DNA from: Octopus bimaculoides
Lineage: Eukaryota
Assembly (NCBI RefSeq): GCF_001194135.2
Contig: NC_068990.1
Coordinates: 48,322,400-48,386,399, forward strand
Direction: 5' to 3'
DNA: 64,000 nucleotides
Shown: positions 1,895-51,651 of the stretch, one piece after another
Position numbering within the stretch: position 1 is the stretch's first letter
Layout of the letters: each line of letters begins with the position of its first letter
Made by a program: the position numbers and the translations under genes
Notes under the pieces: model-generated
What the model saw: only the letters and a program-made list of their open reading frames with translations
Told to the model about the DNA's origin: nothing
Database searches by the model: none

Positions 1895-2091
1895 TCCTTC
1901 AGCTTCTGATATTGTGATTGATGGTAAAGATGGGTCTATATCTAATCTACGTTTGCTTCCATTGGTTCGGTGGTCTGGTGTAGTGTGAACTGAACTGCTG
2001 TCACTTTGTTGATCATACATATAGCTCTGATTGCTGATTTCAGATCGAGCATCCTCACTGCTTGCTTGAGATGCATGCTTTTGTTTCTTCC
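1895..2091 (-). CDS. Internal coding exon, same strand as the giant exon (KKQKHASQASSEDARSEISNQSYMYDQQSDSSSVHTTPDHRTNGSKRRLDIDPSLPSITISEAEG)
   Basis: Acceptor ctttaatttctttgtatttttag|GG and donor GGA|GTGAGT; 197 nt, open only in the phase-1 frame (65 codons); higher GC than the flanks. Confidence 0.7.
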
Positions 2092-2252: not shown

Positions 2253-3128
2253 TATGAGGTCTGATCAATATGTATCCAGACTGTTGCCATAGTAACAAAG
2301 CTAAAGCACACAAAGTGAATTCACTTGGCAAAGATTGACATTAAACTCTGCTCTGCATGTGCATTAACTTTTAACATTCTAGCTCATTTCCACTGTTTAC
2401 AGCAGTGATTGGCAGGAAGGTGTGTAATGTGTGATCGTCGCATTAACCATGACACAGAAAGTTGTTATGGTGATATCTACTCAGAGGCCTATGCAAAGTT
2501 GCAGAAAGTGTATAGAGAGGAGTGTATGAGCCACACACAAGTGTACGAGTGGTTCAGACATTTCCAAGATAGCTGAAAAATATTGATGAATGTTCTGGGA
2601 GACGCACAACCAGTAGAACTGAGTAAAATATCGCAGATGTGCATGCAGCTGTGAGGGGAAATCGTCAAATCACCATCCGGGAGTTATCAGAGGATGAGCA
2701 GATTAGTTACGGTTCAGTTCAGTCCATTATCACTGAAGATTTGGGCATGAGATGCATGTCTGCCAAGTTTATGCCAAAACTGCTTTCAGCTGACCAAAAA
2801 GGCACTTGGGTTTCAGCTGCACAAAATCTCTTTGATTGTATCAAGATTGATGAAAACTTTTTGAAAACTTTTGCATAGGCCTCTGAGCAGGTATTGCCAA
2901 GCTTTTGACAAAATTTGGTGCAGATTCTCAGTCATGGTCAATGCAAAGAATACATGCTACACACATTACTTTCGAGCACTGCTGTAAACAGTGGAAGTGA
3001 TCTAGAACATTAAAACTTAGTGTGCATGCATAGCAGAGTTCATAGTCAATCTATGCCAAGCAGCTTCACTCTGTGCCTTAGCTTCATTATTATGGCAACA
3101 GTCCGGATACTTATTGATCAAACTATGT
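2253..3128 (+). mobile_element. Internally deleted mariner (Tc1/mariner) element with long terminal inverted repeats
   Basis: Left end TA-tgaggtctgatcaata...cactgtttacagcagtg mirrors right end cactgctgtaaacagtg...tattgatca (about 150 bp). Decayed transposase N-terminus: MSHTQVYEWFRHFQ, ITIRELSE...ISYGSVQSII, SAKFMPKLL. Confidence 0.85.
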
Positions 3129-3558: not shown

Positions 3559-3930
3559 GTGTCAATCTTCATCAGTCCTTTGCAAATGTCAACCTTCACT
3601 TAACTCTTGCATGTCTCAACCTTCACTAACCCCTTATAGGTATCAACTTTCACTATCTTCTTACTAGTGTCAGCACTGTCTCCTTGCATGTATCAACATT
3701 CACAGCATTCACTGTCTCCTTGTGAATATCAACACTTACTTCCCCTTACAAATGTCAACATTTGCTACCCCTTAAGAATGCCAATACTCACTGTCCCTTA
3801 CAAACGTCAAAATTCAATGTCTCCCTACAAATGTCAACCTCCATTGTCCATTTACAGATGTCTATACACACTGTCCTGCTGAGAAATGTTAACATTCATT
3901 GTCCATTTACAAATATTAACCTTCACATTT
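3559..3930. repeat. Degenerate about 27-bp minisatellite (aaatgtcaacattcactgtccccttac-like), roughly 14 units
   Basis: Recurring tgtcaac/tatcaac...cactgtc...ttac with about 27-bp spacing. Confidence 0.75.
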
Positions 3931-6752: not shown

Positions 6753-6758
6753 TTTATT
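6753..6758 (-). promoter_or_regulatory. Candidate AATAAA polyadenylation signal for the giant-exon isoform
   Basis: tttatt on + strand about 220 nt downstream of the giant-exon stop. The motif is common in AT-rich DNA. Confidence 0.3.
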
Positions 6759-6979
6759 GTCCAAATAATAGATACTGATACAGTGGTTAGTTGATATAAT
6801 AAAAGAGTTCTTCACTTTACAAGGAAAGTAGGAAAAACAAATTAAAAAGAAGACAGTCAGTATTGTTGATATCAGTTTATGAGAGGATATTAAAGATGTC
6901 TACCTGAGTCCACAACAAAATCAGATGAATCAGTGTTTACATACTGTTGAGGAGAATCTGTTAAATCTGACTGAACAAA

Positions 6980-9900
6980 TTAATGTGATGGTTGAGTGTT
7001 ATATTTTGCTTTGTTCCTGTTGGGTGTAGCAGGATTTGGTAACATTTCAGAAGCAGATGAAGTATATTCAAAAGCATCACTTAATTCTGTGGGTTTAAAG
7101 ATATTGTCATCCTCATACAAAGGATAATTCAGTGCTTTTGCTGAATATTGATTTTCAGGAGATTGTTTTAAGTGTTTGTAGTTTCTAGAAGTATTATTAT
7201 TTAGGAATTGTTGATATGCAATTTTTTCATCATTGAGAACCATATCACGGAGATTTGCAATTGCAGACATTTCTCTAACAGGATGACTTTGAGATGAGCA
7301 TGATTCTAAAAATGATGGGGTGTCTTGATAATTTCTTTCTCTAGGAGAAAAATCTGACGTAATAGATTTTGCTTTGACAGGACTATCAGTATCATTCCAT
7401 TTAGATAGTGTGTCTGTTTCCGAATTATTCTCAAAGTGTGAATCAATTTCAGTTTCATTTACACTTTCAGTGAAATGAGGTGAATAATTTTTCTGAGACT
7501 GTCTCAATTTTATTGCAGGTTTTTGTGGATCATAATGATCAGAACTTGACTGTTTAGAAGGGTCTGATTCTGCATAAGGCTCTGATGACAGGTTTTGATG
7601 CTTGGGATATGATGAATATGATATAATGCCATTATTATATTCAACAGGATAACCAGAGATATTTGATTCTTTATCATCATCAGAATTCATTTCAACAAAA
7701 TATACTCCAGACTCAGATGTTTTGGACAAGTTTTTGTTATTGCTATCTGATTTAGATGGTTTTCCGAACTTTTCTGACTGAGAACTATTAGGTTCAATAG
7801 AAGTATATTCCTTGACAAAAGTAAAAGATTGATCATCAGGTTCCAGAGTATCTGTTCTAGTTACATCCTGATTAAATTCTAATTCAACTTTTAATTTTAT
7901 ACCGTCTTCCTCCAGAGGGTAGATATCCTCATTAGAATTTACACTGTCAAGTCCATATCCAGCTTTTTTATTCAAATATGTGTCTTCAATACTTTTTTGC
8001 TGAAGATTGTTTTCCTTTATAGGAAAATCAGCTGTATTGTGAGTTTCCAGTTTATTCCCATAGCTAGATTCATACTTAACAAATTCATTAGACTTTTCAC
8101 TTCTCCCAGAAGTTTTTATATTATTGTCGTTTTTAGCAAATAACTGTGGTCTTGTGTATGTATATATCCAATGTCCAGAATTTGTTTTGGAATCAGAAAG
8201 AAAAGATTCCTTCCTTTCAACCCAATAATCTAGCAATGGCTCTGAAACATCAGTGGTCATAGATGGTGCAGGAGGTAAGTTTTTATTTACTCCAACCACA
8301 TCATTAAATTGTTTTATGGTATTTTTTGTTTGTGCTAAATCCTTAACATCTAAGTTTTTATCTTCCTTCATTGGCATGGAGTATTGTTTCTGGTTATGCT
8401 TGATGCTAGCACTTCCAACTGATTCAGGGGTAGAATCATTTTTCTTAAAACCAATCCATGAACTGAATCTTGGTATTATTTTACTACTAGAGAGTGTATC
8501 TTCTGACACAGAGTTAAGATTGACTGCTTCAGATTCATTCTTTGATTGAGAAACTTTATTTCCAAACGAAACAGAAGTAGTTGATAAAGGTTTATGTTGT
8601 AATCCAAACCCTGATGATAATTTTTCCTCAAATGACTGAGAAATTACAGGTCTCTTTTTCTTCAATGATGCTTTACAGTTTGGAGAAAATGTGTTTTCTT
8701 TTCTGTCAATCCAGTGAACAGCTTCATCCTCAGGTTTACTAAGGACCAAAGTTGTATCACTGTTCTCCTTTTTATCATCAATACTTAGTTCCAGTTTATT
8801 ACTGGTCATTGTAGAGTGGACATCAAGTGAAGAACTACTTAGTTTATCTAATTCTTTCCCCATTTTTTTTGGCAATATTTTATTATCAGCAGATACGCTT
8901 ACTTCTGAACTAACTGCCTCTTTTGATTTTGGAGAAACCAAATTTGCCACATGTTTGTCAGCTGATATGTTTCCTTCTGAACCAAATGTCGTCTCTTTTG
9001 ATTTTGGAGAAGCCAAACTTGCCACATGTTTGCCAGCTGATATGTTTTCTTCTGAACCAAATGTTGTCTCTCTTCTTTTTGGAGAAGCCAAGTTTACCAT
9101 ATGTTTATCAGCTGATATATTTTCTTCTGAACCAAACGTTGTCTCTCTTCTTTTTGGAGAAGCCAAATTTGCCACATGTTTGTCAGCTGATATGTTCTCT
9201 TCTGAACCAAATGTTGTCTCCTTTGATTTTGGAGAAGCTAAATTTGCCACATGTTTGCCAGCTGATGTGATTTCTTCTGAACCAAATGCTGTCTCCTTTG
9301 ATTTTGGAGAAACCAAATTTGCCACATGTTTGTCAACTGATATGTTCTCTTCTGAACCAAACGTTGTTTCTTTTGATTTTGGAGAAGCCAAATTTGCCAC
9401 ATGTTTGTCAGCTGATATATTTTCTTCTGAACCAAATGTTGTCTCTCTTCTTTTTGGAGAAGCCAAGTTTGCCACATGTTTATCAGCTGATATGTTTTCT
9501 TCTGAACCAAACGTTGTTTCTTTTGATCTTGGAGAAGCTAAATTTGCCACATGTTTATCAGCTGATACGTTTTCGTCTGAACCAAATGTTGTCTCTCTTC
9601 TATTTGGAGAAGCCAAGTTTACGACATGTTTATCAGCTGATATGTTTTCTTCTGAACCAAATGTTGTCTCATTTCTTTTTAGAGAAGCCAACTTTGCCAC
9701 ATGTTTGTCAGCTCGTATATTTTCTTCCGAACCAAATGTTGTCTCATTTGATTTTGGAAAAGCCAAGTTTGCCACATGTTTATCATCTGACATGTTTTCT
9801 TCTGAACCAAATGTTGTCTCCTTTGATTTTGGAGAAACCAAATTTGCCACATGTTTATCAGCAGATATGTTTTTGTCAGGACTAAATGTTGATTCTTTCG

Positions 9901-12900
9901 CTTTGTATATCGTCATTTTTGCTAACTGTTTAACAGCAGATATGTTTTCTTTTGAGCCAAATGCTGTCTTTCTTTCTGGAGTAGCCAAACTCGCTACATG
10001 TTGTTCAGGTGATTTTTTTGTGTGTAGGCTAATGGTTGTCCCTTTTGCCACATGTTTATCCTCTGATATATTTTCTTCAGAACCAAATTCTGTCTCATTT
10101 CTTTTTGGAGCATTCAGTTTTGTTACATGTTTATCAGCTGGTACCTTTTCTTCTGAACCAAATGTAGTTTCTTTTGTTTTTGAAGAGGTCACTTTAGGAC
10201 CAAATGTTGATTCTTTTGTTTTGGGTAACGTCAATTTTGCTAACTGTTTCACAGCAGATATGTTTTCTTCTGAGCCAAATGTTGTCTCTTTTGTTTTTGG
10301 AGAAACCACATGTACCACATGTTTATCATTTTGTGTCTTTTTATCTGGATCAAAGGTTGTCTCTTTTGCCACATATCTATTTTTTGTTATACTTTTATCT
10401 GGCCCAAATGTTGTCACTTTTGTTTCTGGAGAATTCAAATTTGCATCAAGTTTGACAGCAGTTATGTTTTCTTCTGAACCAAATGTTGTCTCTTTTGATT
10501 TTGGAGAAACTAAATTTGCCACATGTTTGTCAGCTGATATGTTTCCTTCTGAACCAAATGTTGTCTCTTTTGATTTTGGAGAAGCCAAATTTACCACATG
10601 TTTGCCAACTGATATGTTTTCTTGTGAACCAAATGTTGTCTCTTTTGATTTTGGAGAAACTAAATTTGCCACATGTTTATCAGCAGACATGTTTTCTTCT
10701 GAACCAAATGTTGTCTCTTTTGATTTTGGAGAAACTAAATTTACCACATGTTTATCAGCAGACATGTTTTCTTCTGAGCCAAATGTTGTCTCTTTTGATT
10801 TTGGAGAAACTAAATTTGCCACATGTTTATCAGCAGACATGTTTTCTTCTGAACTAAATGTCTCTTTTCTTTTTGGAGAAGCCAAATTTTCCACATACTT
10901 ATCAGTTAGCACCTTTTCATCTGGACCAAATGTTGTCTCTTTTGCCACATGTCTATTCTCTGATATATCCTCATCTGGCCCAAACATTGTCTCTTTTGTT
11001 TTTGGAGAAGCCAAATTTGCCACATGTCTATCAGCTGATACCTTTGTGTCTGGACCAAATGTTGTTTCTTTTGTTTTTGGAGAAGTAACTTCTGCCACAT
11101 ATTTATTATCTGGTATCTTTATATCCGGGCCAAAAGTTGTTTCTTTTGATTTTGGAGGAGTCTTGTTTGTTACAAGTTTGTCAGAAGATATATTTTCATC
11201 TGGTCCATCTTTTGTTTTTTGAGAAGCCAAATTTGCCACATGCTTATCAGCAGATATGGTTCCAGATGTTTCATTTTCTAAATTCAGTTTCATATCAGGT
11301 TCACTACTGAACACCCCTACATTTTCATAAGTTGGTATATTCTTCTTATCAATTTGTTTATCAACATGAACATTGGATATGTTAGCAGTTGATTTATCAG
11401 ATTCACAGTGAGGTTTTGATACAACATCTTTGGGACAATCTACAGTTGTTTCACTCTTATAATCAACATTTATTTTTAATGGAGCTTTGCAAGTTATTTC
11501 CTTAACTGGGGTGGTTATCAAACCAGATTTTTGCATAGCTTCACAAGTTCCAAATTTCTTTACTTCAGAATGATTACTACTTGAGAATTTCTTTACTTTA
11601 TTATCTGATTGGGAATGTCTAGGAGGACTTTGATCAACTCTACCTGGTCTATTTTCAGCATACTTCTCTGGAAATGACTTATAATCATTAGATGTAGATT
11701 TTTTCTCGTTTGAGTCATCTTTTTCAGATTTGTGCTTGCTTCTTGTTGCTTTTGTGCGCTCAGCAGAAAAGAATGTCTCTTTTCGATCTATCCAATAGAG
11801 AGATGTCTGCTGAGAGGTTTGGGCTGCAGTAATAGGCTTAGAAAGGGAACTACTAACTGTAGGCTTATCAGTTACTGGTTTTGATGCTAAGTGAGAGCTT
11901 ACATCAGAAGGGACCACATGACCTATAGATAAAATATCTCCAGAATTATTAGAAGTTTTAGGTTTACTTCTTTTGATGGTTTCTCTAGAACTAAGTGGTA
12001 ATTTAGTTTCTGTATGATCTATCCAATCATTTGTAGATGACAAAAGACTTGATTTAGTTGATATTAATTCAGGATGGATGGGTACCTTTCTACTATCACT
12101 GGCTGCAGGTAATAACCTAAGTTTATCATTGTTATATTTTTCAGGATCAGATACATCCTTCTGTTCAGATCTTATTCTTGAGACTTGGTTAGTGTTATTT
12201 GAAGGTGAAGGCAAGGATAGTGATATTTCATCTTTATGTGAAAAAGAATCCAACTGGGATTCCTTAACAGAGGAGATTATTTCTTTTTTGTCTTGAATAG
12301 GGCTTTTAGAATTATTAACTGAGTGAACACTTTTTGGTTTCGTGGCAAGAAACGTAGGTTCCTTTTGAGAATTAGGGTACTGGATACCAGAATCTGAGTG
12401 GAAGTCTTGAATATTAGTTTTGTAAAAATCTGTTTGTGGTTTATGTTGAATGGTATGATCTTTATCAGAAACTTGTCTACTTCCATTGTTTTCTGTTTCC
12501 TGAGACTCTGAAATTTGCTTATACTTAGCGTCCTTCACATCAGCCACTTGATTCTCTGGAGTATCTTTACTTGAATGATGAAGTGGCACTTCTCCTCTAA
12601 ATGAAAATCTAGATTTTCCTGCAACTGTAACTGTTTCTATTTGTGAATTTTTCTTCTTTTTAACATTCTTTACTTGCTCTGAAGAGCTCTTAGCTGGTGT
12701 ACATTTAGAATTTCTCTCACCTGAGGAGTCTTTAATACTTCTTTCAAGTAAATTCCTTGATACACTGTCACTGGGTTTCTTTCTTGAGAATACAATTCTT
12801 TGTTTTTCTTGGATTTGAATTTTTAACTCAGATCTGTCAATAAAATATGTATAATCTGGTGTGTCACTTGTTTTTACAGGAGTTGTTGCTTTTATATTTT

Positions 12901-15900
12901 CCCCAATTTGTTCATTTGCTTTCTTTACAGAAGACCAATTAGGGGAGGAAATTCCTGATGGAAATTTAGGTTTTATGGTAGTCCCAATTTCATCCTTTAG
13001 TACTTTCTTATTATCTGTCTGTTTAGGGGTTTGCTTCATCATTTTCCTAGCTTTATCATCATCTTCAGTAAGTGAAGATTTTTCAAACATTTTTCTTCTG
13101 GAACTGACAAATGAAGAAGCATTTTGGAAAGGAAGCCTTGGCTTGTCTGTTGCCTCAAGTTTTTCTTCAGGCATTTCATCATCTCTAGACTTTTCTACAT
13201 TTACTGTTGAAACTTTTTCAGAGCCATCTGTATTACTGGGAGATACTTTTATGTCCTTTTTAATTCTGTAGTATTTATCAAAGGGATTAAATGAATCATC
13301 TTCCCTTGGAGGCTGTTTGTTGGTAATTTTCCCACCAATTTTCTGAGAGGAACTTTTATCACTATGTTGACTATCACTTGATTGAACAGATGGGGATAGA
13401 AACTGTTGTTTCTCAGCAGACCCTATTTTTTCTTCTCTAGTATCTTTCACTGGTTTTTTAAGAAATTTGTCTTTACTGTCAGTATCATGTAGGACTGGGT
13501 CTTTTGTGAGAGAGTATGATTTTTTATCTCTCAGTTCATCTTTTGGTTTATCAACTTTTGAAATTTGAGGGACAGCTTTCTTGTCTTGAGCATCATCCTT
13601 ACTCTCCCTATCAGTTGAAAGTTGATTTGATTTCTTGATAGATGGAAATCTAGATTTTTGGATAAATGCAACTTTTTCCTCTTCTATTTCGTTATTCTGT
13701 TTAGGGAGTTGCTTGACCATTTTTCTAGCTTTATCATCATCTTCAGTAAATGGAGATTGCTCAAAGATTTTTCTTCTGTTGTTGTGAACGGAAGGAATAG
13801 CTTGGAAAGGAAGCCTTGGTTTATCTGTTGCCTCAAGTTTTTCTTCAGGCATGCCATCAACTCTTGACTTTCCTAAATTTACTGTTGAAACTTTTTCAGA
13901 GCCATCTGTAATACTGGGAGATACTTTGATGTCCTTTTTAATTCTGTAGTATTTATCAAAGGGATTAAATGAATCATCTTCCCTTGGAGGCTGTTTGTTG
14001 GTAATTTTCCCACCAATTTTCTGAGAGGAGCTTTTATCACTATGTTCACTACTACTTGATTGAACAGATGGGGATAGAAACTGTTGTTTCTCAGCAACCC
14101 CATTTTTTTCTTCGCTAGTTTCTTTCACTGGTTTTTTAAGAAATTTGTCTTTACTATCAGTATCATGTAGGATTTTTGTTGACAATTTGGTTGATGGATC
14201 TTTTGAATCAGAACGTGCTTGGTCATCTGTCTGTTGGGATTTCTTTACAACTTTTCGTTCAGTTTCATGTGTTGATGTTATTTTGGGGGCAACAAGCTCC
14301 TCTATGTTGTCTTTATCTTCTTTATCATAGAAAACTTTTGTTGGAAGTTGACTTGGTATATTGACATCAGATGGAAATCTAGATTTTTGGACAAATGCAA
14401 CTTTTTCTNNNNNNNNNNNNNNNNNNNNNNNNNNNNNNNNNNNNNNNNNNNNNNNNNNNNNNNNNNNNNNNNNNNNNNNNNNNNNNNNNNNNNNNNNNNN
14501 NNNNNNNNNNNNNNNNNNNNNNNNNNNNNNNNNNNNNNNNNNNNNNNNNNNNNNNNNNNNNNNNNNNNNNNNNNNNNNNNNNNNNNNNNNNNNNNNNNNN
14601 NNNNNNNNNNNNNNNNNNNNNNNNNNNNNNNNNNNNNNNNNNNNNNNNNNNNNNNNNNNNNNNNNNNNNNNNNNNNNNNNNNNNNNNNNNNNNNNNNNNN
14701 NNNNNNNNNNNNNNNNNNNNNNNNNNNNNNNNNNNNNNNNNNNNNNNNNNNNNNNNNNNNNNNNNNNNNNNNNNNNNNNNNNNNNNNNNNNNNNNNNNNN
14801 NNNNNNNNNNNNNNNNNNNNNNNNNNNNNNNNNNNNNNNNNNNNNNNNNNNNNNNNNNNNNNNNNNNNNNNNNNNNNNNNNNNNNNNNNNNNNNNNNNNN
14901 NNNNNNNNNNNNNNNNNNNNNNNNNNNNNNNNNNNNNNNNNNNNNNNNNNNNNNNNNNNNNNNNNNNNNNNNNNNNNNNNNNNNNNNNNNNNNNNNNNNN
15001 NNNNNNNNNNNNNNNNNNNNNNNNNNNNNNNNNNNNNNNNNNNNNNNNNNNNNNNNNNNNNNNNNNNNNNNNNNNNNNNNNNNNNNNNNNNNNNNNNNNN
15101 NNNNNNNNNNNNNNNNNNNNNNNNNNNNNNNNNNNNNNNNNNNNNNNNNNNNNNNNNNNNNNNNNNNNNNNNNNNNNNNNNNNNNNNNNNNNNNNNNNNN
15201 NNNNNNNNNNNNNNNNNNNNNNNNNNNNNNNNNNNNNNNNNNNNNNNNNNNNNNNNNNNNNNNNNNNNNNNNNNNNNNNNNNNNNNNNNNNNNNNNNNNN
15301 NNNNNNNNNNNNNNNNNNNNNNNNNNNNNNNNNNNNNNNNNNNNNNNNNNNNNNNNNNNNNNNNNNNNTTTTTTAAGAAATTTGTCTTTACTATCAGTAT
15401 CATGTAGGATTTTTGTTGACAATTTGGTTGATGGATCTTTTGAATCAGAACGTGCTTGGTCATCTGTCTGTTGGGATTTCTTTACAACTTTTCGTTCAGT
15501 TTCATGTGTTGATGTTATTTTGGGGGCAACAAGCTCCTCTATGTTGTCTTTATCTTCTTTATCATAGAAAACTTTTGTTGGAAGTTGACTTGGTATATTG
15601 ACATCAGATGGAAATCTAGATTTTTGGACAAATGCAACTTTTTCTTCTTGAACTTCGTTATTACGAAGGTCAACTGTCCGTTTACTGGGCTGTTTGATTA
15701 TTTTTGTTGCTTTATCATCTTCAGTAAATGGGGATTGCTCAAACATCTTCTTTCTGGAACTGTCAGCTGACAGAGTACTTTGGAAAGGAACCCTTGGCTT
15801 CTGTATTGATTGAAGCTTTTCTTCACTGAATCCATTTATGTAAGACTCTTCAGTTTTTTTCATTGTAATGTCTAAAGTTTTGCCAGGAGAAAATTTAACA

Positions 15901-16078
15901 TCTCTCCTGTTTGCAGAAAAGAGACTGTCAGATTCTTTTTGCACAGACATTGTAGAATGTTTAGACTTATCAGATTCACCAAATTGGTCAGAATGAACTT
16001 GCTGCTTCTCTCCAGTAAAGGTAAGTACATCACCATCCTCCTTACCTACCAGGCCTAAAGGTTTGACAGATTCACTTT
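6980..16078 (-). CDS. Giant coding exon (probably terminal) of an unidentified gene; intrinsically disordered S/K/E/T-rich protein with tandem repeats
   Basis: Acceptor ctttttactccttgcag|AA AGT GAA at 16079/16078 (phase 1). The frame is open through 15950 (MSVQKES...) to the gap at 15369 and again from 14408 to TAA at 6982-6980. The two ORF-track entries (14379..15950, 6980..15463) join via the identical 277-bp gap flanks. A stop-free run of about 2,600 codons in AT-rich DNA is not expected by chance. Confidence 0.88.
8905..11265 (-). repeat. Coding minisatellite: about 33 units of 75 bp (25 aa, consensus ADKHVANLASPKSKETTFGSEENIS)
   Basis: Directly visible in DNA (recurring tctgaaccaaatgttgtctc...gccacatgttt) and in translation; a few units are shortened in frame. 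Confidence 0.97.
13040..14165 (-). repeat. In-frame tandem duplication inside the giant exon, period 678 bp (226 aa)
   Basis: LHDTDSKDKFLKKPVK...DDSFNPFDKYYRIKK...KPRLPFQ...TEDDDKARKM occurs twice (tatcatgtagg at 13483 and 14161). A third, more diverged partial copy lies at about 15650-15830. Confidence 0.93.
14132..15645. other. Assembly gap (14409-15368) flanked by an identical 277-bp direct duplication
   Basis: 14132-14408 reads identical to 15369-15645. The offset of 1237 is not a multiple of 3, so the gap length is an estimate. Confidence 0.92.
16046..16078 (-). CDS. Candidate 33-nt mini-exon (xK/E-SESVKPLGLV-G) formed by an internal donor at the start of the giant exon
   Basis: Minus strand ...GGC CTG GTA G|GTAAGGAG. 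Phase 1 in, phase 1 out, matching the phase-1 acceptor of exon 2091-1895. Confidence 0.55.
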
Positions 16079-16680
16079 CTGCAAGGAGTAAAAAGTTAAA
16101 ACTAACGATGGTTCAGAACTGGAAATTGTAATGTTTTAATAGTAGTTGCTAAGGTAAACCTATTTCTATAATTTGAGACACTGTCATGATAAGTATAACC
16201 TTATAAAGTCTCAGATACATTAATTAAAAAAAATCTAAATGATTATTAAGTTTCATTTAAAATATGAGCATGTTCATGTAGATTTGGACTGATCTATATT
16301 ATTTTCCATTATACAGAAAAAGCATTACCATAATCATCAATATATTGAGGAAAGTATCATGGTAACTGTTAACCTTAAAGTATTTCTTTTAAAGCAATAC
16401 TCTGCTCCAAGATATCATCACATATTCTCAAAGAATTAAAATCTAATCATTAAGAAGGAATAGGAATGATTACAGTTAGATAATAAGCTACAATTTCATC
16501 TTGGAGTGGAGTAATATGTTAATAGAAGTAGCATTTTCTTTATTCCAAAGATTGGCCAAGAAGTGGACAAAGGTGAACAAAGGAACCTTCAGCAAACTAC
16601 ATGTGAATTCATGGAAAAGCAAAAAAATCTGATGATAGTCCCAAAAATCAGAGTCTATAAAACAGTCATATCGATGACTA

Positions 16681-30087: not shown

Positions 30088-30568
30088 NNNNNNNNNNNNN
30101 NNNNNNNNNNNNNNNNNNNNNNNNNNNNNNNNNNNNNNNNNNNNNNNNNNNNNNNNNNNNNNNNNNNNNNNNNNNNNNNNNNNNNNNNNNNNNNNNNNNN
30201 NNNNNNNNNNNNNNNNNNNNNNNNNNNNNNNNNNNNNNNNNNNNNNNNNNNNNNNNNNNNNNNNNNNNNNNNNNNNNNNNNNNNNNNNNNNNNNNNNNNN
30301 NNNNNNNNNNNNNNNNNNNNNNNNNNNNNNNNNNNNNNNNNNNNNNNNNNNNNNNNNNNNNNNNNNNNNNNNNNNNNNNNNNNNNNNNNNNNNNNNNNNN
30401 NNNNNNNNNNNACACACATATATATATATATACATATATATACATATATACATATATATACACACACACACACACATATATATATATACATATATATACA
30501 TATATACATATATATACACACACACACATATATATATATATACATATATATATATACATATATATATA

Positions 30569-35967: not shown

Positions 35968-36019
35968 NNNNNNNNNNNNNNNNNNNNNNNNNNNNNNNNN
36001 NNNNNNNNNNNNNNNNNNN

Positions 36020-43405: not shown

Positions 43406-46400
43406 CATCATCATCATCCATCAATTTAAATCCGGGTTTTGTCCCCATTAATGGAGGTGGCTGGATCTACCTCAATGTCATAGCAACCACCCTCACACCA
43501 TCTTGCCACCTTACTCAGTTTTGGGCGTCCTCCCTTCTCAAGTCAATCCTCCCAATCTCCTCCTCCACCTGTCCCCTCCACATTTTCCTCAGACTAAGTT
43601 GCTTTCACTGTCCATTTACCTCAAACTCTAGCACCCCCTTTAGAACATGCTTCTCATCCCTCCTCAACACATGCCCATACCACCACACTCCATTCACTCT
43701 TGCTAGCCATTCCACTGATTCCTCCAACCCCAGCATCCCCATCAAGTCCTCAGTCCTCCTCTTTTCAAACAGCCTCACGCCACACATTTCTCTCACTATT
43801 GCTCTCTCAGTCCTTCTCAAAATTGCCATCTCTCTCTTCCTCAAACACCATGTCTAACTCCCATACAGCATTGCAGCTCTCACACAACTCCTACAGACCT
43901 TTCCTTTTGTCTTCAATGAGAACCTTTTCCCATATAACAATGCTCCACATTCCCTGAACTTCACCCTGCCAAGTCTTGCTCTTGCTGTCACAGCTGCTTC
44001 ACATTCACCACTTACATCCACCCTGTCTCCCAAATAACAAAACCCTCTCACCATCTCCACCTCGTCACATAGTGTTTCCACTGACTTCACCAGCCCTCCA
44101 ACTCCTTTCTCACATCTTCCACAAACAAACTCTCTTGCCAGTCTTGGGATTACCTTCTTGATTTTCGTACATCTACTATGAATCCATTTCTCACATCTTA
44201 CACAACACTGCATTTGCCATTACCCTCCTCACACATACACCACATGGACCTACCTTACTCACTAACACTTCTCCTGCCACCCCACTCACTATCACCTTTG
44301 TCTTCCCGAGGTTTACCTTCAAATTCTTGCTTTCAAATGCCTCCTTCCATTTCCAAAACTTCTCCCTCAATCCTTCCATCATCTCACTCATCAGAACAAG
44401 GTCATCTGCATACAGTATCTCCATTAGCAATCCCTGTCTTGCACTCTCCATCACTACGTCAACCACTATTGCAAACAGCAATGGTGACAACACAGATCCC
44501 TGATGCACACCAACTTTCACCACAAACTCCTCCAACAGCTCTGATCCAATTCTCACTCTTGTCTCTACCCCCTCATATAAACTCATCACTGCTCTCATTA
44601 TTACCTCTAGTACACCTGTCTTCCTCAATGCCCACTCAATCACCTTCCTTTGAACCCTATCAAATGCCTTCTCCAGATCAACGAAGCACATGTACAACTC
44701 TTTCCTCTTATCTCGGTATTCCTCCTGCAATTTACTTACAGTGAACCCTGCATCTATTGTCCCCCTTCCTGGCATAAAACCAAATTGCATCTCATCCACA
44801 TCCACCCCTTTCTGAATTCTCCTGTCCAACGCCCTTTCCACTATCTTTATTGCATGCTCCAATAACTTCACTCCTCTATACACTCCACAACTCATCGCAT
44901 TCCCTTTCCCCTTGGAGATTGGTACCACCACACTTAGTGCTCAATCATCTGGCATTCCTCTTCCATCCAGCATACCCTGGCAGAGCTCCATTCATCACAA
45001 CAGTCCCTATCTCTCCACTTGCAGTTATCATTTCCACACTTACTTCTGATGGACCATTTGTCTTTCCTGTTTTCATTTCCTTCATTGCCTCCGCTACTTC
45101 CTCCTGACTAATCCTCTCCACTGGCCCCTTCACTACAGCAGTTTCCACCCTCTGATCCCATTCATTCTCCTCATTCATAATTCCCTCCATGTGCTCTTTC
45201 CAAATTCTTCTCCTGTCCTTCTTACTAAAATTCAACCTTCCATCACTCCTCCTCATGCATCTTCCTCCCTCAACATCTCTGCCATCATTTTTCATTGATT
45301 TAATAAACCTAAACACTATCTGGGTTCTCATCCAGCCTGCTCAACCTCTCCTCAGCCTCCTTCCTCATAGATCTTGCAACCACCCTCTTTGTACGATTCT
45401 TCATGTTATTATAACTGGCTTTCATTTGCTCAGTCCTATTATTACATAAATCTTTGTGTGCCGCCTTCTTCCTCGCTATAGTATCCCTCACCTCCTTATT
45501 CCACCACCACGTATCTCCTTGATCTCTCCTACCTTTTGTCCTTCCACACACTTCATTACAAGCCTTTAGTACCCCTTCTTTAAAAGACTTCCACAAATCC
45601 AGTGCATCAATGCTTACCAACTCCCCAACTCTCTCCTCAAACCATGCTCTTGTTTCTTCTTCCTTCAGTTTCCACACCTTTCTTCTCTCAAGTGTTCCCT
45701 TTCTCACATGCTTTTTAACTTTCCTCTGATCCAAGTCAGCAAACACCAATGTGTGCTGCAACCCTCAGGGTATTGTCTTCACATCTCTCTGATATTTTCT
45801 GTTTTTCCTGCCAACCAATATGAAATCAATCTCTATTTCATTCCCTCCTGCACTGAAAGTAACCTTCCTCTTCTCTGCTTTCCTAAACCACGTATTCACC
45901 ACACACAACTCTTTCGCATCACAAAACTCCAACAGTATCCTTCCTTCCAAATTTCTCTCCCCAATTCCATTTCCCCCATGCACACACCCTCAAGCCCTGG
46001 ATCTATTTCCCAACATGTCCATTAAAATCACCCATGCCCAAAACCAATTCATCTACCTTTTGTAAAGTCCCACTCATTCGCCATATCATCAAAGAACTGC
46101 TCTTTTTCAGCGATCCCTCTTCCACTTTGTGGACCATACCCACAAATCACCCTTACCACTTCTTCCTCAAATGCTAACACTACTGACATCACTCTGTAAC
46201 TCTTTCTCCTGACTGCCACCACCTTCTCAAGATTTCTTCCTTCACTAAAACTCCCACACCTCCAGTCTCCTTGCTATTTTCCAACCATCACAACTTGTAC
46301 CTTTTTCCCTTGACCCCCACAAATCTTGCACCCTAGCTCCTCCATCTAACCTCCTGCACACAGCACACATCCATCCTCCTCTTCCTCAATTCCTCACACA

Positions 46401-46783
46401 CCTCAGTTTCCATTCCATACAGAGTGCCCACATTCCAACTTCCCAACCTCACCCCAAGCTTCTCAGGCCGTTGGCCATCATAAGGCAAGTCATGCTTGTG
46501 CAACCCAGGATGAGGGTTTGCATTTTCCTTTTTCAGGTAGGCAGGTGCAGCCCACCCCAAACTTTGGGCTGGCTAGTGCCCATTCTCCTTTGCTGTTATC
46601 ATAAGGCTTTTTCCGAGCTGGATTTTCTATGGGGAGCATGCCCTTGCTTACCCCCAACCTCAGTTTCTAGACATGAGTGATCCCAAGACCAAGGCCTCTA
46701 CTACAATTTTTAAGAAATGTGGTGGAAAACTAGCCCAAAAGGCAGGGACACTACGCCCAGAGACCCTTTTCAGAGCCCCACTA
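43406..46783 (-). mobile_element. Near full-length RTE-clade LINE (5' UTR, APE, RT, 3' (ATG)n tail) with 6-bp TSD CTGCTT; inactivated by stops and frameshifts
   Basis: RLGSWNVGTL, DVCCVQEVRWR, EIDFILV (APE); QFGFMPGRGT, CFVDLEKAFDRV, GVHQGSVLSPLLF, YADDLVL (RT). CTGCTT at 43400-43405 and 46784-46789. Confidence 0.92.
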
Positions 46784-50738: not shown

Positions 50739-51651
50739 NNNNNNNNNNNNNNNNNNNNNNNNNNNNNNNNNNNNNNNNNNNNNNNNNNNNNNNNNNNNNN
50801 NNNNNNNNNNNNNNNNNNNNNNNNNNNNNNNNNNNNNNNNNNNNNNNNNNNNNNNNNNNNNNNNNNNNNNNNNNNNNNNNNNNNNNNNNNNNNNNNNNNN
50901 NNNNNNNNNNNNNNNNNNNNNNNNNNNNNNNNNNNNNNNNNNNNNNNNNNNNNNNNNNNNNNNNNNNNNNNNNNNNNNNNNNNNNNNNNNNNNNNNNNNN
51001 NNNNNNNNNNNNNNNNNNNNNNNNNNNNNNNNNNNNNNNNNNNNNNNNNNNNNNNNNNNNNNNNNNNNNNNNNNNNNNNNNNNNNNNNNNNNNNNNNNNN
51101 NNNNNNNNNNNNNNNNNNNNNNNNNNNNNNNNNNNNNNNNNNNNNNNNNNNNNNNNNNNNNNNNNNNNNNNNNNNNNNNNNNNNNNNNNNNNNNNNNNNN
51201 NNNNNNNNNNNNNNNNNNNNNNNNNNNNNNNNNNNNNNNNNNNNNNNNNNNNNNNNNNNNNNNNNNNNNNNNNNNNNNNNNNNNNNNNNNNNNNNNNNNN
51301 NNNNNNNNNNNNNNNNNNNNNNNNNNNNNNNNNNNNNNNNNNNNNNNNNNNNNNNNNNNNNNNNNNNNNNNNNNNNNNNNNNNNNNNNNNNNNNNNNNNN
51401 NNNNNNNNNNNNNNNNNNNNNNNNNNNNNNNNNNNTTGAGATTTTTGAAAAAAAATTTCAGAATCGGAATCTCCATAGCCTAAAACGTGGGATTCCATTA
51501 AAAAAAAAAATAAAACAAGGGGGGAAAGGTTCAGATTACATATAGTCCATCTCTACCTAGAGAAATATATTATTCAAAAGAATTCCAACTCTGTGTGTTT
51601 TTTTATGTTTTATTTATATTCTTATAAAATTAATGTGGGATATAATATATA

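Follow-up and report, generated by a model that had tools for sequence, protein, structure and literature searches.

A giant exon, tentatively an alternative last exon, in a predicted Slp/Slac2-family Rab-effector locus of octopus

The window analysed here, a stretch of 64,000 nucleotides (nt) of the Octopus bimaculoides genome (contig NC_068990.1 of RefSeq assembly GCF_001194135.2), carries on its minus strand a giant coding exon that is predicted, from its sequence and orthology, to belong to a Rab-effector gene of the Slp/Slac2 family (LOC115215841 in O. sinensis; LOC106879475 in O. bimaculoides). Exons that begin a C2 domain of the Slp type follow on the same strand, and the reading that we favour, with a confidence just short of even, is that of a single Slp/Bitesize-like locus in which the giant exon serves as an alternative last exon. 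The exon itself is already present in public NCBI gene models, in which it is unnamed or misnamed, and searches of the literature by locus name and for giant exons in octopus returned nothing relevant.

The proteins retrieved with the giant open reading frame (ORF) are from octopus, namely the O. sinensis 'uncharacterized protein LOC115215841' (75–81% identity) and the window's own product. A cluster look-up added two O. bimaculoides models, XP_052826917.1 (3,013 amino acids, named 'titin') and XP_014784550.1 (LOC106879475; 2,927 amino acids), and the giant ORF is represented in three O. bimaculoides models. L001 (GCA_001194135.2, chromosome CM046610.1), the contig that carries XP_052826917.1, matches the window at 100% identity, gaps included; position x of the window corresponds to L001 position 113672 - x, and the minus strand of the window to the plus strand of L001. 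The parts of the giant exon and of the assembly gap that interrupts it are as follows.

16079–16100, minus strand: 3' splice site of the giant exon, a polypyrimidine tract followed by AG (16080–16079), phase 1, read from the sequence and used by XP_052826917.1 and XP_014784550.1.
15369–16078, minus strand: portion of the giant exon upstream of the gap.
14409–15368: assembly gap of 960 N, most likely false (overlapping contig ends).
6980–14408, minus strand: portion of the giant exon downstream of the gap, through the stop codon TAA (6982–6980); the orthologue is 75–81% identical.
15369–15645, minus strand: copy 1 of a 277-nt duplication across the gap, 100% identical to 14132–14408.
14132–14408, minus strand: copy 2 of the same duplication.

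A first-pass annotation of this DNA, made from the letters alone, had placed a phase-1 acceptor at 16078. Reading of the minus strand bears this out: the acceptor sequence is ...tactccttgcag/AAAGTG, the first exon base is 16078 and the two opening bases of the exon finish a codon, while tblastn puts residue E310 at this same boundary. As assembled, 16078 to 6980 does not form one continuous frame, since the open frames above and below the gap differ, although 960 is a multiple of 3. The flanks of the gap, 15645–15369 and 14408–14132, both abut it and are identical at 277 of 277 positions, whereas the true paralogous units of 678 nt close by are only 89% alike. Such an overlap is unique to this gap among the nine gaps in the locus, the other eight being free of it, and the unit duplicated across the gap is present once in O. 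sinensis. Most simply, the gap would thus represent two overlapping contig ends. Collapsing the overlap yields a single open frame of 7,862 nt, made up of 2,619 codons and the TAA at 6982–6980, which corresponds exactly to residues 309–2927 of XP_014784550.1. The earlier figure of about 2,600 codons running to a stop at 6980 is therefore accurate once the gap is collapsed, but not for the sequence as assembled, in which the frame is broken at the gap. Alternatively, the gap would conceal one or more extra units of 678 nt, which would leave the frame equally intact because 678 is 3 x 226. In the region L001 97594–99540, the 'titin' model XP_052826917.1 bridges the gap as an intron, with the consequence that a stretch of approximately 90 residues is duplicated (KKVAFVQKSRFPSDV...ILHDTD); both this duplication and the name 'titin' appear to be artefacts.

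The ORF of the exon is conserved in O. sinensis with in-frame insertions and deletions, and the giant exon forms the 3' end of the gene in the NCBI models of two octopus species. The giant ORF is a genuine coding exon, predicted to be entered at the 16078 acceptor, with 7,862 nt of coding sequence after collapse and a size of about 8.1 kb including the predicted 3' untranslated region (UTR). Use of the acceptor as a recursive splice site was considered and rejected: the upstream exon joined to 16078 reads CAG/AAAGTG, and a GT is not regenerated.

The identity of the host gene comes from its N-terminus. Residues 9–120 of O. sinensis LOC115215841, the gene of which spans 261 kb, match the FYVE_2 or Slp-homology domain (SHD) with E = 8e-19 (Pfam, 437-residue N-terminal query), the best solved relatives of which are the Rab27-binding domain of melanophilin (2ZET, 3e-12), the zinc finger of Slp4 (2CSZ, 5X6T) and rabphilin. 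The SHD is followed by a linker exon of 864 nt (L001 15825–16688), located 81 kb upstream of 16078 and ending in phase 1 (ACA G/gttaga). For O. bimaculoides, the N-terminal SHD that marks members of the Slp/Slac2 family is assigned by orthology of the shared linker and giant exons. By definition, synaptotagmin-like proteins (Slp) carry C2A and C2B domains behind the SHD, and Slac2 proteins have the SHD but lack C2 domains (PMC10153138). The giant-exon isoforms contain no C2 domain, as is the case for Slac2 proteins. A Pfam scan of the tail found no domain, and that of the full 2,927-residue O. bimaculoides model gave only a sub-threshold MYRF_ICA hit, with no match to Rab_eff_C, the myosin- and actin-binding C-terminal region. 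Two other identities were rejected: ankyrin, in the absence of any ANK, ZU5/UPA or death domain, only FYVE_2 being found upstream and C2 downstream; and titin, the NCBI name of XP_052826917.1, for which there was no Ig, Fn3 or kinase match. The name 'titin' was assigned automatically to what is a long, repetitive protein.

Beyond the low end of the window, on the same strand, three exons begin a C2 domain (L001 114226–114342, 115155–115341 and 116346–116450). They read ...GDIQFGLDYDYKTSCLEIRVKQCRNLAPADVKKNKSDP/YVKSYLLPDKTKTGKRKTKVKK..., match Pfam C2 (1e-13) and have the C2A domain of Slp4 as their closest solved relative (3FDW, 1e-23); the C2A/C2B exons lie 4.9–9.5 kb downstream of the giant exon. 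Two further elements of this region fall within the window.

1895–2091, minus strand: candidate linker exon of 197 nt, entered in phase 1 and left in phase 0, coding for G-KKQKHASQ...ITISEAEG.
3740–3761, minus strand: start of the coding sequence (CDS) of a 413-residue C2 model, an ATG exon of 22 nt followed by GAA/GTAAGT (phase 1); the extent of the exon is inferred.

Both splice sites of exon 2091–1895 are good (acceptor tttgtatttttag/GG, donor GGA/GTGAGT), and the exon is open in the phase-1 frame only, in agreement with the earlier proposal that it requires phase 1 (a G + GG join). Its exit phase of 0 matches the next exon, L001 114226–114342, from which C2A continues in frame; the distinct downstream C-terminus that had been postulated for this locus thus exists, in the form of Slp-type C2A exons. 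Scanned naively, the 8.5 kb from the giant-exon stop to the C2A exons gave only three candidate exons, 2091–1895 being one of them.

These observations are most simply accommodated if the giant exon occupies what is, or ancestrally was, the linker of one Slp/Bitesize-type locus. In one outcome, splicing into 16078 would be followed by cleavage and polyadenylation shortly past the stop codon, yielding an SHD with a giant tail and no C2 domains, a Slac2-like product. In the other, the giant exon would be bypassed and the upstream phase-1 donor joined to the phase-1 acceptor at 2091, yielding a classical SHD–linker–C2A–C2B Slp. Phase 1 is shared by the upstream donor, the 16078 acceptor, a donor-like site at 16045 and the 2091 acceptor, so that two routes to a C2 product keep the frame, namely skipping of the giant exon or inclusion of a mini-exon of 33 nt. 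The choice of an alternative last exon is the simplest mechanism and the likely switch. The sequences show the exon with its frame, the gap artefact, the domains, the synteny and the compatibility of the phases; the existence of bypass transcripts, the poly(A) site and any function of the tail are what we infer.

The one-locus reading gains support from the position of the C2 genes. NCBI annotates a separate C2 gene of 413 residues in O. bimaculoides, the CDS of which starts 3.2 kb after the giant-exon stop, and in O. sinensis a C2 gene of 467 residues starts 3.5 kb after it, in both species on the same strand. The ATG of the O. bimaculoides C2 model (window 3761) sits in a diverged minisatellite of 26–27-nt units (window 3589–3914), and its 22-nt exon has the appearance of a 5' end completed ab initio so as to suit the phase-1 acceptor at 2091, which suggests that the true 5' partner of the C2 model was not found. 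Fly Btsz provides a precedent for one Slp locus that unites isoforms with a Rab-type zinc finger, C2-only isoforms and large optional exons (PMC10153138).

Several points weigh against a single locus. In two independent NCBI annotation runs, both informed by RNA-seq, the C2 gene is separate from the SHD/giant-exon gene, and of the 21 O. sinensis isoforms examined not one bypasses the giant exon. No SHD exons turned up in the O. bimaculoides DNA that was read, the SHD being assigned there by orthology; a search of the window for upstream SHD or linker exons returned none, and the nearest upstream coding exon is 81 kb off, outside the window. No protein containing exon 2091–1895 was found among 5.8 billion or 1.84 billion proteins, a negative that is weak because a query with the C2A exons also missed the octopus C2 protein itself. 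An exhaustive HMMER search of the exon against 1.84 billion representatives gave only a spurious repeat protein, and a homology search with the hypothetical junction plus exon 2091–1895 gave no candidate; for the reason just given, neither is counted against the exon. A metagenome scan for the sequence of the exon gave 0 matches. As to C2A–C2B and an SHD in one polypeptide, the downstream Slp4-like C2A exons are frame-compatible and lie on the same strand, and in both annotations the genes are separate. Taken in full, the proposal that one locus yields both classes of Rab27-type effector, a classical Slp and a giant Slac2-like protein with a 2,600-residue, phospho-site-rich disordered tether, by choosing between a 7.9-kb last exon and the C2 exons, with the 5' splice site of a 33-nt microexon perhaps a recent gain of O. 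bimaculoides, is offered tentatively and with a confidence somewhat below even.

The alternative that survives best is that of two independent units, a Slac2-like gene with a constitutive giant last exon and a C2A–C2B gene with its own promoter between 6980 and 2091, with no switch and with the 16045 site unused; we regard it as quite possible, though not probable. The separation of the two genes in both NCBI annotations speaks for it, and every isoform examined ends in the giant exon, with X32 ending at an earlier stop that truncates the giant-exon sequence. Exon 2091–1895 offers an in-frame ATG (MYDQQ...), and the fly btsz gene has a C2-only product from an internal promoter (BtszF; PMC10153138). 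What two genes would leave as coincidence is an SHD-less tandem of Slp-type C2 domains 3 kb behind a C2-less SHD gene, on the same strand and in two species, for which one Slp locus is the simplest account, together with the match between the phase of the 2091 acceptor and that of the upstream donor. The 22-nt minisatellite ATG exon with which the O. bimaculoides C2 model would have to begin is, moreover, implausible.

A second alternative is the model of the first-pass annotation, in which a 5' splice site at 16045 is itself the switch, its use producing a 33-nt microexon spliced to 2091 and its neglect a terminal exon of 7.9 kb. The elements that bear on this model are the following.

16046–16078, minus strand: candidate in-frame mini-exon, formed by the opening 33 nt of the giant exon, entered and left in phase 1, coding for (E)SESVKPLGLV(G).
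16040–16045, minus strand: donor-like GTAAGG (TAG/GTAAGG, 10.1 bits), the second-strongest in the exon, with its GT inside a Gly codon GGT.
12715–12723, minus strand: strongest donor-like site in the exon, CAG/GTGAGA, 12.3 bits, phase 1, GT at 12720–12719.

A near-consensus donor 33 nt into the exon, leaving phase 1, is present on the minus strand as had been described: the sequence reads CTG GTA G/GTAAGG, with the donor-like GT at 16045–16044, and the segment 16078–16046 measures 33 nt and ends in phase 1. Being phase-symmetric, it would add 11 residues upon inclusion and leave the frame unchanged. Donor-like sites were scored with an approximate, self-made position weight matrix, with codon shuffles as the null. 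Only three sites of at least 8 bits occur in the collapsed exon (12720, 16045 and 16049, the last overlapping the 16045 site), and the exon is depleted of donor-like sites overall, as a genuinely long exon should be: where the shuffles predict 17.9 sites of 6 bits or more, only 8 are present (P about 0.004). A donor-like site of at least 10 bits in the first 60 nt arose in 1.2% of the shuffles; the 16045 site is thus conspicuous, but it was found post hoc. A site so strong, so near the acceptor, second best in a site-depleted exon and in the required phase, favours the model. The strongest site, at 12720, would as a putative donor make an exon of 2,121 nt that joins 2091 in frame.

The 16045 site does not stand as a conserved element. 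Asp replaces the Gly of the window in 21 of the 21 O. sinensis isoforms examined (LGLV-D-KEDG against LGLV-G-KEDG), and the protein sequences imply that the donor GT is absent there, since Asp is encoded by GAY. Splicing close to the 5' end of the giant exon is seen in none of these 21 isoforms, no gene model of either species splices there and the 33-nt segment is ordinary coding sequence in every gene model. Exons of 33 nt are intrinsically hard to define. Nor is the donor required, since the next exon upstream, at a distance of 81 kb, is likewise left in phase 1 and outright skipping of the giant exon keeps the same frame. Of the proposed toggle, the site and the phases are borne out, the need for it and its conservation are not, and as the switch of this locus it is unlikely. 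The 16045 site may be used in O. bimaculoides, and the 33-nt mini-exon would be, at most, an optional, O. bimaculoides-specific additional route, to judge from the comparison of the two species.

A last alternative arises from the 3' end of the giant exon, where three elements were noted.

6890–6979, minus strand: 29 in-frame codons and a TAA past the stop of the window, still coding in O. sinensis.
6898–6906, minus strand: weak donor-like CAG/GTAGAC, 6.5 bits, phase 1, GT at 6903–6902.
6753–6758, minus strand: first AATAAA past the stop, a candidate poly(A) signal, weak given how common the hexamer is on the minus strand, at 1.2 per kb.

The TAA at 6982–6980 aligns with a Lys codon in O. sinensis, the ORF of which goes 29 codons further and ends in ...DSGRHL. 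These 29 codons are intact and in frame in the window (FVQSDLTDSPQQYVNTDSSDFVVDSGRHL, followed by a stop), with 28 of 29 residues identical to those of O. sinensis, and the TAA stems either from a truncation in the recent past or from a problem of base calling or heterozygosity. The site CAG/GTAGAC at 6903 is located 77 nt past the stop of the window and three codons before the O. sinensis-type stop. The earlier statement that no convincing donor was seen near the end of the ORF is accurate only in part, a phase-1 donor-like sequence being present there, if a weak one. If, now or ancestrally, the 6903 donor joined the whole 7.9-kb exon to 2091 as an internal composite exon, giving a giant Slp with C2 domains, the annotated end would reflect read-through of that donor and the window TAA a lineage truncation or base-call error; the phase of the site, the preservation of the codons past the stop and the O. 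sinensis ORF crossing here to stop only three codons past the donor-like site, a typical composite-exon look, agree with this, but the site is weak, lacks a G at +5 and is used by no model, a stop precedes it in O. bimaculoides and conservation of 87 nt between two close species is expected even if neutral, so that we consider this very unlikely.

Returning to the single locus with an alternative last exon, the Slac2-like outcome would carry an approximately 2,620-residue, repeat-built tail, rich in Ser (14%), Lys (12.6%), Glu (8.3%) and Thr (7.4%). Its repeats are arranged as follows.

13018–13995, minus strand: two diverged units of 678 nt (226 codons; PVK..TSEEK...DSKDKFLKK), with a third, older partial unit near 15697–15825.
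8918–11157, minus strand: tandem array of about 30 units of 75 nt (period 75; 27.1 + 2.5 copies), coding for 25-residue repeats KETTFGSEENISADKHVANLASPKS.

The 25-residue units bear SPK(S/R) sites in about 30 copies, and the tail also contains five conserved W-I/V-D/E-R/H-K/S/T-E motifs. For the last 645 residues, AlphaFold2 run on the single sequence gave a mean predicted local distance difference test (pLDDT) score of 37.6 and no confident fold, in itself weak evidence. The tail appears to be disordered, and the repeat-rich, disordered character ascribed to it earlier is consistent with the repeats found, with the lack of Pfam domains and with this single-sequence model. Judged by its sequence, it is a candidate regulated spacer or scaffold.

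Relative to the window, O. sinensis has one extra, identical unit of 227 residues and a 71-residue insertion after 'ILPK'. The 71-residue segment has no counterpart in the O. bimaculoides genome, and for this reason it was rejected as a sign of a hidden intron in the window's exon. Apart from one alternative N-terminus and isoform X32, which stops early within the giant-exon sequence (ILPKTIQN, then a stop), the 30-odd O. sinensis isoforms differ almost only in that parts of the repeats are deleted in register, a pattern that may be an artefact of alignment. Antisense to the 75-nt array, a 755-codon ORF (window 8955–11222, plus strand) is almost certainly a by-product of a stop-free repeat frame and not a gene.

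Among known systems, the closest family is that of Slp/Slac2 and the closest locus-level analogue, as far as analogy goes, would be Drosophila btsz. Of the nine isoforms of the fly gene, some carry a Rab-type zinc finger and some are C2-only, large exons are optional, and all nine share the C2 domains and one 3' UTR (PMC10153138). The likeness, which is drawn from published descriptions, lies in a Slp-family locus that combines zinc-finger isoforms, C2-only isoforms and large, non-domain optional exons, and a composite-exon giant Slp with C2 domains would resemble the long fly isoforms; in contrast, the octopus giant exon has its own stop and would remove the C2 domains that all Btsz isoforms keep.

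Slac2 proteins such as melanophilin (Slac2-a) and MyRIP (Slac2-c) resemble the giant isoform in having an N-terminal SHD with a zinc finger and no C2 domain. They are 600–860 residues long, with myosin- and actin-binding regions, and are encoded by separate genes, whereas the octopus tail is of about 2,600 residues, repeat-built and devoid of a match to Rab_eff_C or any other Pfam family. Slp4 (granuphilin) and Slp5 share with the putative bypass product an SHD zinc finger and C2A–C2B, the octopus C2A being nearest to that of Slp4 (3FDW, E = 1e-23); no giant alternative last exon is known for either, a point that was not searched exhaustively.

The parallel with giant ankyrins, suggested for this exon at first sight, holds as an analogy only, the host being an SHD/FYVE_2 Rab effector. 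In vertebrate 480-kDa ankyrin-G and 440-kDa ankyrin-B, Drosophila Ank2-L/XL and Caenorhabditis elegans unc-44, one multi-kilobase exon likewise adds a long, repeat-rich disordered stretch to an adaptor, but the family is unrelated and its ANK, ZU5/UPA and death domains are missing from the octopus gene. The giant exons of fly Ank2-L/XL are located at the 3' end, and those of vertebrate ankyrins are internal cassettes that keep the C-terminus.

In a contig of another mollusc (L002; ENA ctg21943_3x_l, 1–1341 and 10154–10757), Slp-type C2A exons are found that are 75% identical, with no detectable homologue of the giant exon or of the linker exons. Long Ser/Asp/Thr-rich ORFs in shifting frames, unlike the octopus giant exon, lie about 9 kb upstream of C2A on the same strand of that contig and may represent an analogous long linker exon in a low-coverage assembly.

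Elsewhere in the window, a degraded non-LTR (long terminal repeat) retrotransposon is found within the 81-kb intron (43600–46600, minus strand) as several adjacent ORFs, with a reverse transcriptase match (RVT_1, E = 3e-28), in a GC-rich region with strong GC skew. The same intron has three more assembly gaps (30088–30411, 35968–36019 and 50739–51435), none of which has duplicated flanks. Between the giant exon and exon 2091–1895, the opposite strand carries a fragment of a mariner/Mos1-type transposase (2409–2878, plus strand; HTH_48, E = 3e-6).

Giant disordered exons are already known from adaptor genes; the new element, as yet unproven, would be the dual Slp/Slac2 output of one locus. With regard to annotation, the NCBI product name 'titin' is wrong, the 90-residue duplicated stretch of the current model was made by a false gap, and in both octopus species the separately annotated SHD and downstream C2 genes may be parts of a single gene. 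Should the bypass isoform exist, one gene would switch a vesicle-Rab adaptor between a membrane-docking C2 form and a long disordered tether. Such a locus, if true, would also illustrate a plausible evolutionary route from Slp to Slac2, that is, how 'Slp homologues lacking C2 domains' arise.

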